The notes below the pieces were generated by a model. That model searched no databases. It had not been told where the DNA came from and worked only from the letters and a program-made list of their open reading frames with translations. A stretch of 63,862 nt of DNA, filler included, from Reticulomyxa filosa (lineage: Eukaryota > Protista > Foraminifera), in the NCBI GenBank assembly GCA_000512085.1. It is 22 parts of 22 records of this genome, joined end to end, with 100 filler letters (N's around TTAATTAATTAA, not from the genome) between each part and the next. Parts side by side here need not be neighbours in the genome. Positions count along the whole stretch, not along the records: positions 14,853 to 22,327 come from ASPP01019498.1; 21 more parts are not named here. The stretch is one strand, 5' to 3'. Position 1 is the stretch's first letter; each line of letters opens with the position of its first letter. Positions 14,728 to 22,519 of the stretch are shown piece after piece. The position numbers and the translations under genes are program-made.

Positions 14728-15260
14728 TGCAAAAAAAGTCAACAGATTGTTTNNNNNNNNNNNNNNNNNNNNNNNNNNNNNNNNNNNNNNNNNNNNTTAA
14801 TTAATTAANNNNNNNNNNNNNNNNNNNNNNNNNNNNNNNNNNNNNNNNNNNNAAAAGAGAACAAGTAATTGCATTAATACAGAACATCCAACAATTGAAA
14901 AGATGTAATTGATTTGCAAAAAAGACCAAATGATCGGATTGAACAATTAAATATTAAATTATCAGTCATGTTTATAAATTTAGACAACACAAAAAAAGCA
15001 CTAAAACCATTTTAGGAAATCAAAACACAAATATTCGATAACTTAAATTTCAAATTATTACACAAATTGAAAAGAAAGAATAAAAAGAAAAAGAGTAAGG
15101 TACACTATGTTTAAATATGGCAAAACTTATTAACACATGACTTCATTTCTCGTTTTCCCAAGTCTAAAAAATGGAATGAATGTTTTTATTGATGAGTAAA
15201 TAAATGAAGGAGATTATTTTTACTTGGAGAATATATCACTTTAACTATTCATATGATAGG

Positions 15261-15485
15261 TGTGGGGAGTCTACTGTGGAGAATCTGCACTAAATGTAAT
15301 ACGAAAGGAACTTAGTTCCAAAAGAACAATTTCAATAAAAGGAAAGTAAATTAAAGAGAATAATGACAAAAGGAAAGTAAGAAAAGACAAGGAAGTAAGA
15401 AGTAGTTAACTGAGGAAGTTTAACCCAAAGGGAGCTATTCAGTTCCATACGAGTTCAACCATGTGTGATAAGGGCTTGCCCTACA
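15261..15485 (+). mobile_element. Solo LTR (225 bp) with 4-bp target-site duplication TAGG
   Basis: Begins TGTGGGG and ends CCCTACA (TG...CA, imperfect inverted termini). Flanked by TAGG at 15257-15260 and 15486-15489, with an internal AATAAA. A second copy of the 3' end at 28234-28275 stops at the same CA. Confidence 0.8.
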
Positions 15486-15590
15486 TAGGTATGAAAAAAA
15501 AAGAAATTTGAATAAAGTATGTTTTATTTTGAAAACGAGCATGAAAAAAAAGATATTATCATGATTGGAACAATCAAGTATTTTGTCATT

Positions 15591-15893
15591 TTTATGCAGA
15601 ATATCTTCAACTACAAAACAAAAAAAGTAAATTTCTTTTGTTAAAAGATGTTAATTATGAGTCTCTGATACATTTCTTTTTTACTTTTTTGGATCCATGC
15701 ACAAGTATTTTACTTTGTTCTTTTCATTGATTTTCAAAATGAAACAGTATCAGTCCATGAAAAGAATAAAGTAAAATACTTGTGCATGGATTCAAAAAAG
15801 TAAAAAAGAAATGTATCAGAGACTCATAATTAACATCTTTTAACAAAAGAAATTTACTTTTTTTGTTTTGTAGTTGAAGATATTCTGCATAAA
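15591..15893. repeat. Long inverted repeat: two 137-bp arms with a 29-nt spacer
   Basis: Arm 15591-15727 is the reverse complement of 15757-15893 with two mismatches. Confidence 0.95.
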
Positions 15894-16429
15894 CTGAAAT
15901 TCGAACAACTTCAATACCATTAAAAATGCAATATCTTTTCATTGATAAAAAAAAAGAATAAAATAGTCGAAATGAGTATACTTTTTCTTGCAAATGTTAC
16001 AGAAATACGAATAACAAAGGCATTTGTTCCTTTTGCGAAAGTATGGAACTTTTGGATAACTATGTTTCCAAACGCATTTGTTAACGGATAAAAAAAAGCA
16101 TAATCATACTTAGAAAGTAATAAAGATTGTTATGAAAACATACTGTCTGAACAAAAACAATCATTTAAACACAATAACGTCCGACAAATGTGAAATGCAA
16201 ATTTTGGTAATTTTTGATAATACATCATATTACATAAAACACACGAGTCAATGCCTTCTAAAAAAAAAGATTAAGTAAAATCAAGTATTGAGTCAACATT
16301 TCTTTGTCAAGATAGAACAACATTTTTTAATTTAACTCTATTTATCAACAAGTTTGTTTGTTATGAATTTCATTTTGTTATTATTATGTAATTCAAAATT
16401 AAAAATATTTTATAAAAATTTCAAAAAAG

Positions 16430-17585
16430 AAAAAAAGAATTGTCTTGCATGTAAAATGAAAATGTTATATATTATCAATATTTTTCTTTACTTTCCATTA
16501 TGATTAATATAAAAAAAATAAAGAAATATATCAATGAAAATGCCATTGACTTGGGCAACAACTGATAATATTTTTAAAAGTTAATTATATGTATTTATTT
16601 TGTCACATGTAACAAACTTTTTATAAAAAATTATTTTTAAAGAATATGAACAATGAAAATTATAATATTTAAATTTCCAATTTTGTGAAAAATTTTTCAG
16701 TTTGAAATTCAGAATACAAATACAAAGAGAATGTCCAAAACAATTTATATTTGTACATTTTGCTTCATGTTCCTAATTAGTGTAAAAAAGAAAATTCTTA
16801 ATTTGAGCAAATGATTGTGTATGCAAACTTCGTTGTGTTTCCTTAAGAAAGAAAACGAAAAAGAAAACGGAGAAAAAAGATAAAATTGCAAAGGCGATAC
16901 TATGTACTTGAAACTTTTTTTTGTTGCCATAATTCTGCAACAGCAAATTATACAAATCAATTCTTTCAAACATATGAAAGTATATAATATGTGTAGACAT
17001 GTTGCCTCTTTGACAGCAGCGTCAATACACCATGATATATTATCTTTTCTTTATAGTTGCAATCATGTTATCAATCTTTAGATGAAAGTGCAAAAGCACT
17101 TGAATACGTTTCCAACGGTGAAAGTATATTTCTTATTATCACTAAAAACATTCAATAAAGTAATTGTTATAGACCTGACATAACGAAAGAGATTGATAAT
17201 ATCCATTTATATTTTTCTTGATTCCAAATCGATAATAAAGAAAAGCTTGTATAAGCTTCCAGCGTAAATTATTAAATAGCACTTTATCTGCGCTGGCATT
17301 CACATTTTTATAAATAATAAATTCGGATTTTCTGTCAAAAAAAAAATTTTCAAATAGAAAAAAGTGTTATGAATGTAAAATTAAAAAGTATATGCATAAT
17401 ATTTTTCTTAAGACAGTCAATTATGATCAATATGAAAAAAAATAATAAATATATAAATAAAATGCCATTGACTTGTGCATCAATTGGAACTATTTTCACA
17501 CAATAAACATAAATTTAAAATTTAATTATATGTACGTATTCAATCACATGAACATCACTTTTTATAATTTTTTTTAAAGAATAAG
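16430..17585 (+). repeat. Diverged direct duplication (~16430-16650 vs ~17350-17585)
   Basis: Collinear shared blocks: atgtaaaat, aatatttttctt, aaaatgccattgacttg, ttaattatatgta, tcacatg, tttttaaagaata. Confidence 0.65.
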
Positions 17586-18110
17586 TTGTAAATTTACTTT
17601 CGTTCTACTACTTTGACAAAATTAATAATGAATATATGAAAATTATTGATTTTTCTATCTTTTCGAAGTTAACGTTTTATTGATTTGAGCCTCAAAAGGA
17701 ATAAGATGAAAAAAATTCACAAAAGTCAATCATTTCGAGAACTGTTCTTCTTCAGGACGTACGTTTTAAATCTTGTCCATGGAAATACAAGATATGGACT
17801 TGTGGAAACCTGCAACAAGAAAAGTTTGCGAATATGCTCGATCCATTGATATCGACATTTGCTTACAATTTTGTATTGCCACCACCATACGACTGGAATG
17901 CCCTATTAAAAAGATCATCATAACAATATTATTTTCAATTAAAAAAAAAAAATGGAATATGTGTATACAAAATGAAAAACGTACCGGAACGGAAATATCG
18001 ACACTTCAACAACGATGAATGGTCGCATATATTTGTATATTTAGTATACCTGGAAATGATAAAAAAGAATGGCAAAGAAATGATTGGGTGGTGGAGTACT
18101 TTATTATGCT

Positions 18111-18507
18111 GGAGACTTGTAGTAGCTGTTAAAAACAACTACTACCTCTCAACCTCGCTAGTCGGGAGACTCGTAGTGATTAGTACTTACCTCTCAACAG
18201 TCGCTATTTTAAATAGCCGGAGATTTGTAGTTATTTCCAACTACCTCTCAACAGTCACTATTTAAAAAGCCGGAGACTCATAGTACTAATTCAAGCTACC
18301 TCTCAACCGACTCTTCTGCTGTAGATGTAATGAGGATCTGCCGTGTCCATCCCTCATTACCTCTCAACGGCCTCGACATTAGATTTGTAATGGTTTACAT
18401 TACCTCTCAAAGTCCTTTTTTATTTTTTTTTTTATTCATTTGTTTATTAATGGCCGGAGACTTGTAATGATTGGGTAGGTACATCTTTGCAGTCTCAACA
18501 TTACTCT
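18111..18507. repeat. Tandem array of 6-7 hairpin units with constant flanks and variable stems (candidate structured ncRNA or ssDNA sites)
   Basis: Six exact TACCTCTCAA copies at 18143, 18188, 18242, 18297, 18358 and 18401, each preceded by a (GG)AGA-YTY-GTA-like motif and a unit-specific self-complementary insert. A seventh partial unit lies at 18456-18507. Confidence 0.9.
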
Positions 18508-19494
18508 TACAGCTTTTTTTCAATGTACTCCCTCTTCACCCATCTATTCCCACCTCCCACCCCCCCCACCAATTATCTATCTTCATTTCCAATCCGGTCA
18601 CAAAGACAATAGCAACTCATTGCAATCGTTGTTGTCGTGTCGTTAAAGAAATAACAGGAACCTGATAACACCATCGCAACTGCATCAATGATCAAAATCA
18701 CATTTATGGTACAATCGACTCCAGTTTAACCATATATTTTAACATTTGGTTTCAATGCTTTGTTTATTAAAAAGAAATAAAATTAATTTTTTAAAAATAT
18801 CCTGTTCAACAAAAAAAAAACAGGAAAAAATTATAAACGATCTTGAGTCTATTATAACTCCGATTGTTTCTAATGTTCCTGGAGTTCATAGCGTTTCTGA
18901 TGTTTTTAAGTTATTTATGACTCCAAACTTCAATACTCGTAAAAAAAAAAAAATATAATAAGATATTTGCATATGATAAAACAAAAATTAAATGTCATCA
19001 CATTTTGATGTTACACAATTAATTTCAAATTCCAAAAAATGTTGACAATGTAATTTTAGTTTTTTAATTGTTATATTGATAATAATTTTTTTTTTAAAGC
19101 AATGCCAATTGTTAAATAATAAATATTTTAGCCAAGAAAAAAATACTTTTTTTTGCTTGTTTAATTTTTGAGTAATGAAAATCAAGTTTTTATACGTTGA
19201 AATGCCCGCTTCGTTTTAACAGGTAGATAAGTTTTTGCTTTTTATCTAATGTGTCACAATTGCTGTAAACTTATTTGAAAGAACTACTATTCGAGTTATA
19301 TTCCGCAATTGCCTTGTACTTTTCATGATAGGCAATTTGAAAATTTTTATAGTCATTACAATTGGAAACAACTACACTTGATTTTTTTAAAAAATTTGTT
19401 TGAAAACCTGAACAACAAAAAAAAAAAGTTGTTTTTCCATCCCAACCATACAAACAAAAAAAGATAAGTTTTCTGATTTGTAGAAAATTTGTCA

Positions 19495-21286
19495 TTATTT
19501 GCGTAAATTTGGTTTAATTTTCCCAATTTGTAAGAGTTCACTCAAACACAATGGTGAAATTGGTAAAGTTCCATGTTTCGCCGGGATGCTATTAACAGTG
19601 GAACTATCAGCATCAATATCACTCAAGCCACTAAATTTCTGATTGCCTGGTGAAACAATGGAAGGAAGGACCGAAGACGAGTTTTCTCTAGAGGTAAAAG
19701 AAGGGAATATGTATTTTCATATGTGCAAGGAGAGTTTTAAAATGTAATATATAAAGGGAAGAAAAGAGAGGAGGAAGGAAAAAAAAACAGAGTCAATTGA
19801 ATTACGCCAAGCTAACCTCGGCAAAGTATTGATCTTGAAACTCTTTGTATTCTTATTATTTGAGTTTTTATGAAATTGTTTATGAGGGTTGATTTGAATT
19901 CCATAAGCACTAAACAACAGCTCATTTCGAATTTGTTTGCGTTGTTTTTTTGTGAGTGCTGTGTTATTAATAATCAGGTGATCCACTTTTTCTTCATGAT
20001 TTTGACTGTCGTTTGTGCAATTGATTTCCAAGTCTCGGGCATGTTGGTCAGTATTCCGAGAATATTGCTGTGCACAAGAAGGTGCGTTGCTATTGCCTTT
20101 TCAATCCAATCAAAAAAAAAAAATAAAAAAATAAAAAAAATAAACACACATATTTTGTGTTTTAAATTTAATTACTATTGTGCAAGGCTCTTCTTTTTTT
20201 TTCTTTTTTTTTTTTTTACTTTTCATTTTCATTTTCCCTCCCTCCGTTTTTTAAAAAATCTTTAGTGGTCTAGGGACGTATGGAGGTATGCATTTTGCAA
20301 AAAAAAAAAAAAAAAAAAAAGTACAAACGTATAAAAACTTACCTTTATTGCTTCCATAATCTTTGGGAGAACGAAAGTTACTTGTGTCCAAGTTTTCATT
20401 GGGTGCCAGAAACAGTTGTTTGTCGTGGCTATTCTTGAAGTTCCGATGACTATTGAAAATGTTCAATCTCTCGCAGTCTTTCAATTCAGTATTGTCACAA
20501 AAGGGTGCGTTTTTATTGCTCCATTGTATCCATTGTTCTGTGGATATGTTGTCCATTTCGAGTGCACTTGTTGATTGATCCCTTTCAAGACCGATCTCTT
20601 GACTTGCTAACCTTTTTTGCATTTTTTTGGCGACTTTGGCCGCCAAAACACGTGCCTTTTCTCTTTTCGTTTGCAGTCTTTTCCTTTCTTCCAATTCGCT
20701 ATTCTGATATTGCTGTATCCTCTCTTTTGCTTTGTTTTGAGCCTCTGCCACCCTCTCAAATTGTCTAAGCACAAATTCTGTTGCTCGAAATGTTGTAAAA
20801 GTTTCAGTCTATTCAAGATTAAGGAAAAAAAAAATTATATATACATATATATATATATATATCGTCGAGTTTTTTTTTTTGTTAAAATATTTTGGGGGAA
20901 TATTTTGGATTTCTAAAACAAATATAATGGCTCTGAGATTTTGTTTTTGGCTAAACTTGCTTTTCCTCGCAGAGAAAGGATTTGGAATCGACCCTTTCTG
21001 TCTTGTTAGCAGTATTGACTTCCCAGTGCCCTTGTGATTTCTGGACATTGCTTTCTGAAAAAGAGTCTCCAACTTCGCTTTTCTCAATTATTGACTCGGT
21101 TTTTTTTTAGATTTGTGTGTCCTTTTTATTTTTGAGCTAATACTCAGAACAGTCGAATTTAACAAAGCTTCTCTATCTGTCGTCTCTTCTTTTTCATCTT
21201 GGTTGCTTTGTTTCCTTTTAGTCTGCGAATAATCCCTTTGACGGGTCATTTTCAAGCTTTTGGATCCTTTGTTTTATTGCACATAT

Positions 21287-21323
<37 letters not shown>

Positions 21324-22226
21324 AGTATATACGTGTATACGTAGATATTAATGAGATTTATTTCTATATGTAGCATATGCAAAACTTTCACGTTTGGATG
21401 TTTGTTCGCCTTTTGTGGCAGTTTTCGAAAGTATAATCGGTCGGGTGACATTGGAAGATTTATTATTTTTGGTGGATATGTCAGTGGATGTGATGGCACT
21501 GACAACGTGGCGTTTTTTCGAAGGGATTGGGTCCCATCTTTTGCTTGGTTGTTTTTTAGTCTTTTGAACAGACTCTTGGAATGTCTCCAAATCTTCAAAG
21601 AAAATAGGAGTGACCATTCTTTCGTTGTGATTCACTGTAAGGCTGACCACTTCACTCGCCGCTTCCGTCGCATTGTTTGAGCGTTTGTACTTACTCCATA
21701 GTGGTTGAACGGAAAGGGGATCAGATCGACTAGCTTGCTCGTTCATTGCTTGCAAACTTGAATTCACTGTCTCTTGGCAGGTTAAATTATTGTTCGCCGT
21801 ATCGTCGAGTTTTGCATCATCTAATGGGGATGGAAATACCAAACACAAGACAAAATAAAAAAGTACGTATACTTCAAAAAAGAAAAAAAGGGAGATCACT
21901 ATAGTTACAAGAATGATAGTAACAACCATAAACATTTTTATTTTATTTTGTTATTGTTGTTACTCGAAGCAAATGTAAAAAAAAAAAAAAAAATAATATA
22001 TATATATACATATATATATTAGTTATTATCAAGCAGTGACTAGACTTTGTTGATTTGCCTGCAATTCGACAGTGACATGTATGTCGTTAGATCCGGGCAC
22101 CTCAGTGCAAGAAAAGATTTCTGTGGCTTTCTTTTGGTCCACGCAGAAGCAGATGAGCATATTTTTAATTTCTTTGTTGGCTTGTTTTGAGGCAATAAAC
22201 ATTGTTGTCGTTCCATAATGAGTCAA
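19495..22226 (-). CDS. Hypothetical multi-exon protein with a basic coiled-coil segment, 5'-partial
   Basis: Chain of same-strand exon-like ORFs (22029-22226, 21348-21935, 20809-21087, 20251-20772, 19717-20031, final exon ending TAA at 19495) separated by simple-repeat introns. Could be more than one gene. Confidence 0.55.
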
Positions 22227-22519
22227 TTTGAATAAATCCTATTTCCAACAATAAAAGAACGACAAATTATACAAAAGGGTAAAAAAAAAAAAAAAAAGAG
22301 GGGGGGGGGGGGGGGGGGAGAAAAAAANNNNNNNNNNNNNNNNNNNNNNNNNNNNNNNNNNNNNNNNNNNNTTAATTAATTAANNNNNNNNNNNNNNNNN
22401 NNNNNNNNNNNNNNNNNNNNNNNNNNNTTTATATTTAAAGAAAATTCATGCAAATCAGTTTTATACTTTTTTTTTAAAGTGTGATCAGAAGCAAAATTAA
22501 AAATAATTATTACAATATC

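Follow-up and report, generated by a model that had tools for sequence, protein, structure and literature searches.

Paralogous microRNA (miRNA) clusters consist of tandem hairpins in one orientation that share an invariant 5′ block on one arm and have divergent 3′ halves, and precursors of the miR-451 type are short, Dicer-independent hairpins. The Class I RNAs of dictyostelids are 42–65 nt long and combine a short terminal stem with a conserved motif of ~11 nt beside it and a variable remainder; their genes are separate, each with a DUSE promoter ~60 nt upstream, lie in intergenic clusters and are followed in many cases by T runs (PMC7919456). Here we describe an array of seven hairpin units in the foraminifer Reticulomyxa filosa that by analogy appears closest to these two systems in its working logic, although membership fails for both. 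The array occupies positions 18111–18507, extended here to 18520, of a window of 63,862 nt (the whole stretch of DNA analysed), in which 22 parts from 22 records of the genome (NCBI GenBank assembly GCA_000512085.1) are joined end to end with filler; all positions given below count along this window. The part carrying the array is a whole contig of the assembly, ASPP01019498.1 (7,475 nt; window positions 14853–22327).

The likeness to paralogous miRNA clusters lies in the tandem hairpins of a single orientation and in the sharing of a putative seed beside a varying 3′ half and opposite arm, which is seen here on the minus strand: the invariant block, (G)UUGAGAGGUA, starts with U at the extreme 5′ end of the 5′ arm, and no two units have the same 3′ half. 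The first unit, with a predicted hairpin of ~42 nt and a stem of ~17 bp, also resembles a precursor of the miR-451 type. In contrast to the stem of ~20 bp or longer (a duplex of ~22 nt) expected of miRNAs, however, most stems here are 9–12 bp, the spacing of 43–61 nt leaves no basal stem, and the Rfam miRNA models were unmatched. We know of no miRNAs described in foraminifera. The architecture of the Class I RNAs is likewise analogous, but the motif found here differs in sequence and sits partly inside the stem, the abutting units with linkers of 6–22 nt leave no room for an element at −60, and the host belongs to Rhizaria rather than Amoebozoa.

The array comprises seven head-to-tail units (U1–U7) of ~45–60 nt, all on the plus strand, separated by linkers of 6–22 nt and one T-rich spacer. 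The layout of a unit is (GCC)GGAGA-YTY-GTA, a variable interior, then TAC-C-TCTC-AAC. As stated in a preliminary description of the locus made from the sequence, the 10-mer TACCTCTCAA occurs in six exact copies (starts 18143, 18188, 18242, 18297, 18358 and 18401) at irregular spacings of 45, 54, 55, 61 and 43 nt. The 5′ block GCCGGAGAYTYGTA is found in U1–U4 and U7 with 0–2 mismatches, and TTGAGAGGTA is contained in unit arms. The complete unit pattern occurred four times, compared to no occurrence in 100 dinucleotide-preserving shuffles; the array is real and beyond chance, and it is present as originally described. Mismatch-tolerant scans of the piece carrying the array found no further copy of the 3′ motif, and the 5′ block was matched elsewhere in the piece only by one chance match with two mismatches on the opposite strand (20027–20040). 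A covariance model of the seven units, which the preliminary description had proposed as a means of finding relatives, recovered all seven, all on the plus strand, but no further copy upon scanning the contig (next match E 1.3). Tandem Repeats Finder (TRF) detected a 54-nt period over U2–U4 only (2.6 copies, 76% matches), and these units share linkers.

U1 (18111–18153) reads GGAGA-CTT-GTAGTAG ... CTACTAC-C-TCTC-AAC and is the best predicted hairpin of the array. U2 (18165–18198; 49.4 bits in the unit model) has intact constant blocks and an inner helix of just 3 bp, while U3 (18219–18252; 56.1 bits) contains the hairpin GTAGTT/AACTAC. The linker between them carries the palindrome GCTATTT-T-AAATAGC (18203–18217, plus strand) that had been reported earlier and that is not repeated in the other linkers. 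In U4 (18272–18307), ATA stands in place of GTA and the inner helix is weak. U5 (18323–18368) has a 9-bp helix, GTAATGAGG/CCTCATTAC, and a 5′ block degraded to GTAGAT, and U6 (18381–18411) has GTAATG/CATTAC, a 5′ block degraded to TTAGATTT and a motif ending in AAA rather than AAC. The T tract noted after U6 is present as runs of T6 and T11 (within 18416–18433) in a T-rich spacer (18416–18449, plus strand). U7 (18456–18499; 43.7 bits) is diverged, with a 28-nt interior. Its earlier reading as GTAATG...CATTAC-TCT gives way to a better parse with a perfect 6-bp closing helix, GAGACT (18457–18462) with AGTCTC (18491–18496), with AAC next to it; the internal loop is closed through changes on the 3′ side, and the TCTCAAC core is retained. 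A T7 run, read from the plus-strand sequence, follows at 18514–18520.

An exact 11-mer, AATGATTGGGT, is present both in the left flank (18079–18089) and in the interior of U7 (18466–18476). This shared sequence suggests that the array may have expanded locally through duplication of a U7-like sequence. On the plus strand, the array is followed immediately on its 3′ side by a C-rich tract, CCCACCTCCCACCCCCCCCACC (18530–18575), which shows partial complementarity to GGGTGGTGGAG of the left flank (18086–18096).

The strongest signal of the analysis is a step in conservation. When the units are aligned by their 3′ motif, six of them are identical over ten consecutive columns, and the 15 columns upstream and 17 columns downstream have pairwise identities of 0.13–0.67, mostly 0.2–0.5, which is the random level for this composition. 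The two strands of the hairpin base are also unequally conserved, the 5′ block clearly less so than the 3′ motif. In U5 and U6 the 5′ block has lost the G that pairs with the invariant block, and the loss is uncompensated while the 3′ motif remains exact. Because the step is sharp, constraint is favoured over plain slippage. Neutral decay of a duplicated unit is unlikely, since a perfect 10-mer stands beside saturated neighbours, and conversion is unlikely as well, since whole units and not a 10-mer would be homogenised. A purely structural signal of the bulged-stem type does not predict a 3′ motif that is more constrained than its partner strand. Taken together, the step and the asymmetry point to the 10–11-mer as a sequence-specific selected element, whose complement need only keep the unit folded. 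On this sequence evidence, the array is probably under selection.

Folding of each unit singly on the plus strand, scored as z against shuffles, gave predicted hairpins better than shuffles for U1 (z −3.9, −14.6 kcal/mol), U3 (z −2.7) and U5 (z −3.6) and a marginal result for U6 (z −1.4). The same picture was obtained on the minus strand, where U1 reached −19.2 kcal/mol (z −3.9), and the whole array folded better than shuffles on both strands (z −6.6 plus, −6.75 minus). The original statement that every unit can fold thus holds in part: by these predictions, hairpin potential is present in four of the seven units, solid in three and marginal in one, and absent in three. Predicted stems are 9–17 bp counting the internal loop, with inner helices of 3–4 bp in U2 and U4.

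Covariation of the stems, which had also been claimed, was assessed in two ways and proved weaker than this claim. Within the 9-bp core that can be aligned, pairing is seen in 92% of cells, compared to 28–54% with the partners slid, and five of the nine pairs never vary. Stems outside the core cannot be aligned by column, and each unit's own arms were compared with swapped arms instead. Summed over the units, own arms gained 20 Watson-Crick pairs, whereas permuted arms gained 8.3 on average (P about 0.0008). Most of this signal comes from two groups, GTAG/CTAC (U1–U4) and GTAA/TTAC (U5–U7), together with extensions that are private to U1, U3 and U5. Covarying stems are thus real but few, amounting to perhaps three to five events. 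What stands of the earlier account is the anatomy, namely constant flanks in direct orientation around a variable interior that tends to keep pairing.

The array is non-coding. No frame is open across it, and the spacings of 45, 54, 55, 61 and 43 nt are not all multiples of three and break any frame, so that an in-frame repetitive coding exon, which the preliminary description had considered, is not what is seen. The longest open reading frame (ORF; 17972–18265) crosses U1–U3 and stops inside the array, in U3. Neither this ORF nor a neighbouring ORF of 173 aa has a homologue, and a protein atlas search, used as a protein route to further copies, gave no match. The array lies within an island of raised GC content (17853–18602; GC 0.37–0.40 in a background of 0.19–0.31) whose plus strand is pyrimidine-rich (GC skew −0.30) and whose surroundings are non-coding. 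RNA genes in AT-rich genomes appear as GC islands.

Given the GC island, the single orientation, the hairpins, the invariant strand with its degenerate opposite strand and the freely varying top, the locus has the look of an RNA cluster. We tentatively read it as a lineage-specific polycistronic cluster of mini-hairpin RNAs in which the invariant strand is the recognised part, and we hold this reading at rather less than even confidence. One precursor transcript of the array would fold into a row of mini-hairpins, each with a 4-bp GAGA/UCUC closing helix, a small asymmetric internal loop and an inner helix based on GUA/UAC, and with a top varying in length and sequence. Selection would keep one strand of the base and not the helix, that is, the 10–11-mer (plus strand, UACCUCUCAA(C); minus strand, (G)UUGAGAGGUA), and the opposite arm would be needed only for keeping the unit folded.

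The invariant strand could serve in either of two ways. It may be the shared 5′ seed of small guide RNAs released from the 5′ arms of minus-strand hairpins, and the arm asymmetry of U5 and U6 fits guide and passenger arms. Alternatively, it may act in a plus-strand transcript as the site of a protein or nuclease at the base of the hairpin, where the invariant block lies on the 3′ side. The plus strand has T6 and T11 after U6, T7 after U7 and no internal T5 run, as for an RNA polymerase III unit; T5 runs are present within the array on the minus strand. Transcription, the strand used, processing and any target are what we infer from these features. A more specific form of the proposal is a class not previously described, of polycistronic mini-hairpin RNAs of ~35–45 nt with the invariant 10–11-nt UUGAGAGGUA as seed and a non-canonical biogenesis that would require neither a long stem nor a basal junction; this form of the proposal is distinctly doubtful.

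Several observations weigh against an RNA cluster. U2 (z +0.3), U4 (z +0.3) and U7 (z −0.5) fold no better than shuffles. Folding favours neither strand, with similar energies and about two G-U pairs gained on each. Stems of 9–17 bp at a spacing of 43–61 nt are too short for canonical Drosha or Dicer substrates, and T runs are common in this AT-rich genome. Only a single core pair shows change in both members (G:C to A:U), and 43 of 500 shuffles reached the core's covariation score; the covariation is too thin to serve as proof of RNA structure. The array is known from a single locus, the unit-model scan having covered the contig. To our knowledge, almost nothing is known of the small-RNA pathways and non-coding RNAs of Foraminifera, or of Rhizaria generally.

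It is somewhat unlikely that the array is instead a set of cis-acting sites and no RNA gene, the 10-mer being a binding site present in six copies of the same orientation. The invariant block, 10 bp between random flanks, is of the length expected of a site recognised by a protein or by another RNA, and the irregular spacing of 43–61 nt and the retention of the 3′ motif where its pairing partner has decayed fit this alternative. The sites could form a homotypic transcription-factor cluster in DNA between genes. They could also lie in a long 3′ untranslated region of the neighbouring gene, or downstream of it, where UUGAGAG|GUA, partly in hairpins, would resemble a 5′ splice site or a U1-binding site and would be followed by AAUAAA. 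That gene, ETO15067.1 ("NOT family protein [Reticulomyxa filosa]"), is the sole annotated gene of the contig; it runs on the minus strand from 21746 to 18991, and the array lies ~480 nt past its annotated stop. A minus-strand AATAAA, read from the sequence (18105–18100), follows directly, 6 nt past the last minus-strand unit, although this signal is common in AT-rich DNA.

An exon neighbouring the array matched ETO15067.1 at 100% in an exhaustive HMMER search, and the protein has no Pfam domain. Its distant matches concern only the coiled-coil part of foraminiferal F-box/ankyrin proteins. As far as this 7.5-kb contig is concerned, the earlier statement that a partner protein gene is missing from the neighbourhood is correct. 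The last ~135 residues of ETO15067.1 resemble translated AT-rich non-coding DNA, so the true 3′ end of the gene is uncertain and the model looks unreliable there. A (TA)n microsatellite is translated as IYIYIY in the same model. Microsatellites of (TA)n and of palindromic TATATACG (20836–20862, 21281–21348 and 21996–22019) lie in introns of this gene.

These features of the gene bear on the cis-acting sites: with C-terminal exons resembling non-coding DNA, the array may be separated from the true stop by 1 kb or more. The donor-like sites lack a G at +5 in five of six units, and the inferred 5′ splice sites of ETO15067.1 are too heterogeneous to give a consensus for comparison. An array of binding sites also leaves unexplained the inverted, degenerate copy of the half-site (GGAGA-YTY-GTA) and the additional complementarity specific to U1 and to U5.

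A neutral, decaying minisatellite with a quasi-palindromic unit of ~54 nt, whose constant blocks are the remnant of recent duplication or conversion, is a rather unlikely source of the array. Palindromic minisatellites share with it the head-to-tail units of ~54 nt, detected by TRF over U2–U4 along with the shared linkers, and the AT-rich intergenic setting. The single known locus, the failure of three of seven units to fold better than chance and the lack of significance of the formal covariation are in keeping with such an origin, and the occurrence of AATGATTGGGT in the left flank and in U7 resembles the edge of a local duplication. Covarying stems of the kind seen could, in addition, be products of templated mutation in a quasi-palindrome. 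It is, by the same measure, rather improbable that slippage and intrastrand template switching in fast-mutating, hairpin-prone centres produced the "compensatory" changes without selection. A minisatellite predicts roughly uniform divergence along the unit, but the profile here is stepwise, with ten of ten columns invariant amid random flanks; given saturated flanks, a neutral 10-mer should be saturated as well. Whole units, rather than a 10-mer, would be made uniform by conversion or unequal exchange. Unit length here varies (43–61 nt) through the hairpin interior. GC-rich blocks, moreover, persist in a background of 19–31% GC.

An origin as DNA-level hairpin sites or as the remnant of a mobile element, such as single-strand hairpins targeted by an HUH/Rep-type or other recombinase in the manner of REP, attC or Helitron ends, or the internal subrepeats of a non-autonomous foldback element, is improbable. 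Each unit is an imperfect palindrome in which the ends are conserved and the centre varies, and both strands fold equally well, as expected of DNA. A weak, patchy inverted repeat brackets the array (left arm 17996–18016, without assigned strand, with partner 18625–18645, 86% over 21 nt), and a second pair is formed by 18051–18070 with 18572–18591. The GC island is flanked by AT-rich repeats (17342–17583 and, inverted, 18945–19204), and Rep-like genes have been reported in R. filosa (bioRxiv 10.1101/2022.12.15.520654). However, the bracketing repeats are weak (50–60% identity, or 21 nt at 86%), and since several such matches are expected by chance in 7.5 kb by our estimate, it is doubtful that they belong to the array. 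No transposase, Rep or integrase was found on the contig, where the tested ORFs and the annotated protein are devoid of Pfam domains. No target-site duplication and no defined termini were seen, all units are direct with linkers of 6–22 nt, and nothing similar was found in the viral or prokaryotic collections searched. The AT-rich flanking sequence is part of a dispersed repeat of ~250 nt, found at 16414–16646 and 17342–17583 (72% identity over 255 nt); the inverted copy at 18945–19204 is weaker, at about 60% identity.

As possible functions, the preliminary description had named a guide-RNA precursor cut at a bulged stem or, alternatively, single-stranded DNA sites like repetitive extragenic palindromic (REP) sequences or integron attC sites. 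Like the REPs of bacterial interspersed mosaic elements (BIMEs) and attC sites, the units are short imperfect palindromes in an array, with conserved ends, a GTAG-like start and a variable centre. Both systems belong to prokaryotes and depend on a RAYT transposase or an integrase, whereas the present contig is nuclear DNA of a eukaryote and carries no recombinase or transposase. In BIMEs the orientation of the REPs alternates, and between attC sites there are gene cassettes; here the units run head to tail with linkers of 6–22 nt, and the analogy does not extend to membership.

Searches for relatives were consistent with the earlier remark that no described element matches. Rfam scans of the contig, and of 18050–18560 alone, at E up to 10 gave a best value of E 2.9 on the array, far below gathering scores. 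A pattern of two successive 10-mers matched at least 197 loci in metagenome, viral and prokaryote collections, and none among the matches listed had the 5′ block. The loci inspected were unrelated coding repeats, satellites and CRISPR-like arrays of period 66; this pattern is too loose, and the collections searched hold no foraminiferal genomes. The full-unit pattern gave five single chance matches and no arrays in viral contigs, and a literature search for the 10-mer returned just primers and unrelated sequences.

That the array belongs to a known small-RNA class, such as a let-7-like miRNA cluster, spliced-leader (SL) mini-genes or a small nucleolar RNA (snoRNA) cluster, is highly improbable and this reading is largely refuted, with no Rfam family at E<2 on the array. 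On the minus strand, U1 reads GAGGUAGUAG-UUGU, strikingly close to the 5′ part of let-7, but let-7 is a bilaterian family and the host a foraminifer. As to SL RNA, in every unit GAG|GUA stands at the internal loop of the stem-loop, as does the donor junction at a small bulge in stem-loop I of SL RNA (e.g. in Paulinella), and SL RNA genes are likewise multi-copy and tandem (PMC6053224). For R. filosa, there is no report of SL trans-splicing (PMC6053224). Only 7 nt upstream of GUA (UUGAGAG) are conserved here, and beyond them identity falls to 0.13–0.67, mostly at the random level, so that the would-be SL exon is at random identity between units (offsets +11 to +27). SL RNAs are ~100 nt long with an Sm site and further stem-loops, whereas the units here are half that length (43–61 nt), with one hairpin each, no second or third stem-loop and no shared Sm site of the AAU(3-6)GG type.

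The U3–U4 linker (18258–18273, minus strand) reads TCCGGCTTTT, of which 10 nt are identical to the Paulinella micropora spliced leader TGGATAATCCGGCTTTTCTG (PMC6053224). Homology to this leader was rejected and the identity judged to be coincidence, because it concerns 10 nt in one linker only and no GT follows. A snoRNA cluster was rejected as well, as the C/D boxes (RUGAUGA, CUGA) and H/ACA boxes are not shared between units on either strand and no Rfam snoRNA matched on the array.

Other candidates were also set aside. Tiny GT...AG introns, on either strand, would imply implausible micro-exons of 11–26 nt, U4 has no GT, and the annotated introns of the neighbouring gene are ~70–130 nt. A bulge-helix-bulge motif was rejected as the outer helix is not consistent, and a hammerhead or other small ribozyme as catalytic cores are absent. 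K-turns or C/D boxes, a U12-type branch site, a CRESS-type nonanucleotide origin and excision footprints were considered and dropped.

Two further features were observed elsewhere on the contig. A long inverted repeat at 15541–15946 has arms of 140 nt (15591–15730 and 15754–15893) that are 98% complementary around a 23-nt loop. It gave sub-threshold matches to plant MIR families of Rfam (the best reaching 50.5 bits where the gathering score is 79), and it is a candidate hairpin-RNA locus or miniature inverted-repeat transposable element. Homopolymer runs of A17 and G19 at the contig end (22281–22318) may be assembly-end artefacts.

The array fits no described family, and its novelty rests on one locus and on the conservation within the array. 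If it is an orphan, untranscribed repeat, it would be an ordinary minisatellite with an odd conservation profile. If the 10-mer is a protein or small nuclear ribonucleoprotein site, it would be the first cis-regulatory motif for this group. If the array is expressed and processed, it would represent a lineage-specific RNA class with an unusual biogenesis from short hairpins. A selected mini-hairpin array would offer a cheap and concrete entry, by way of one probe and one covariance model, to the non-coding RNA of foraminifera.

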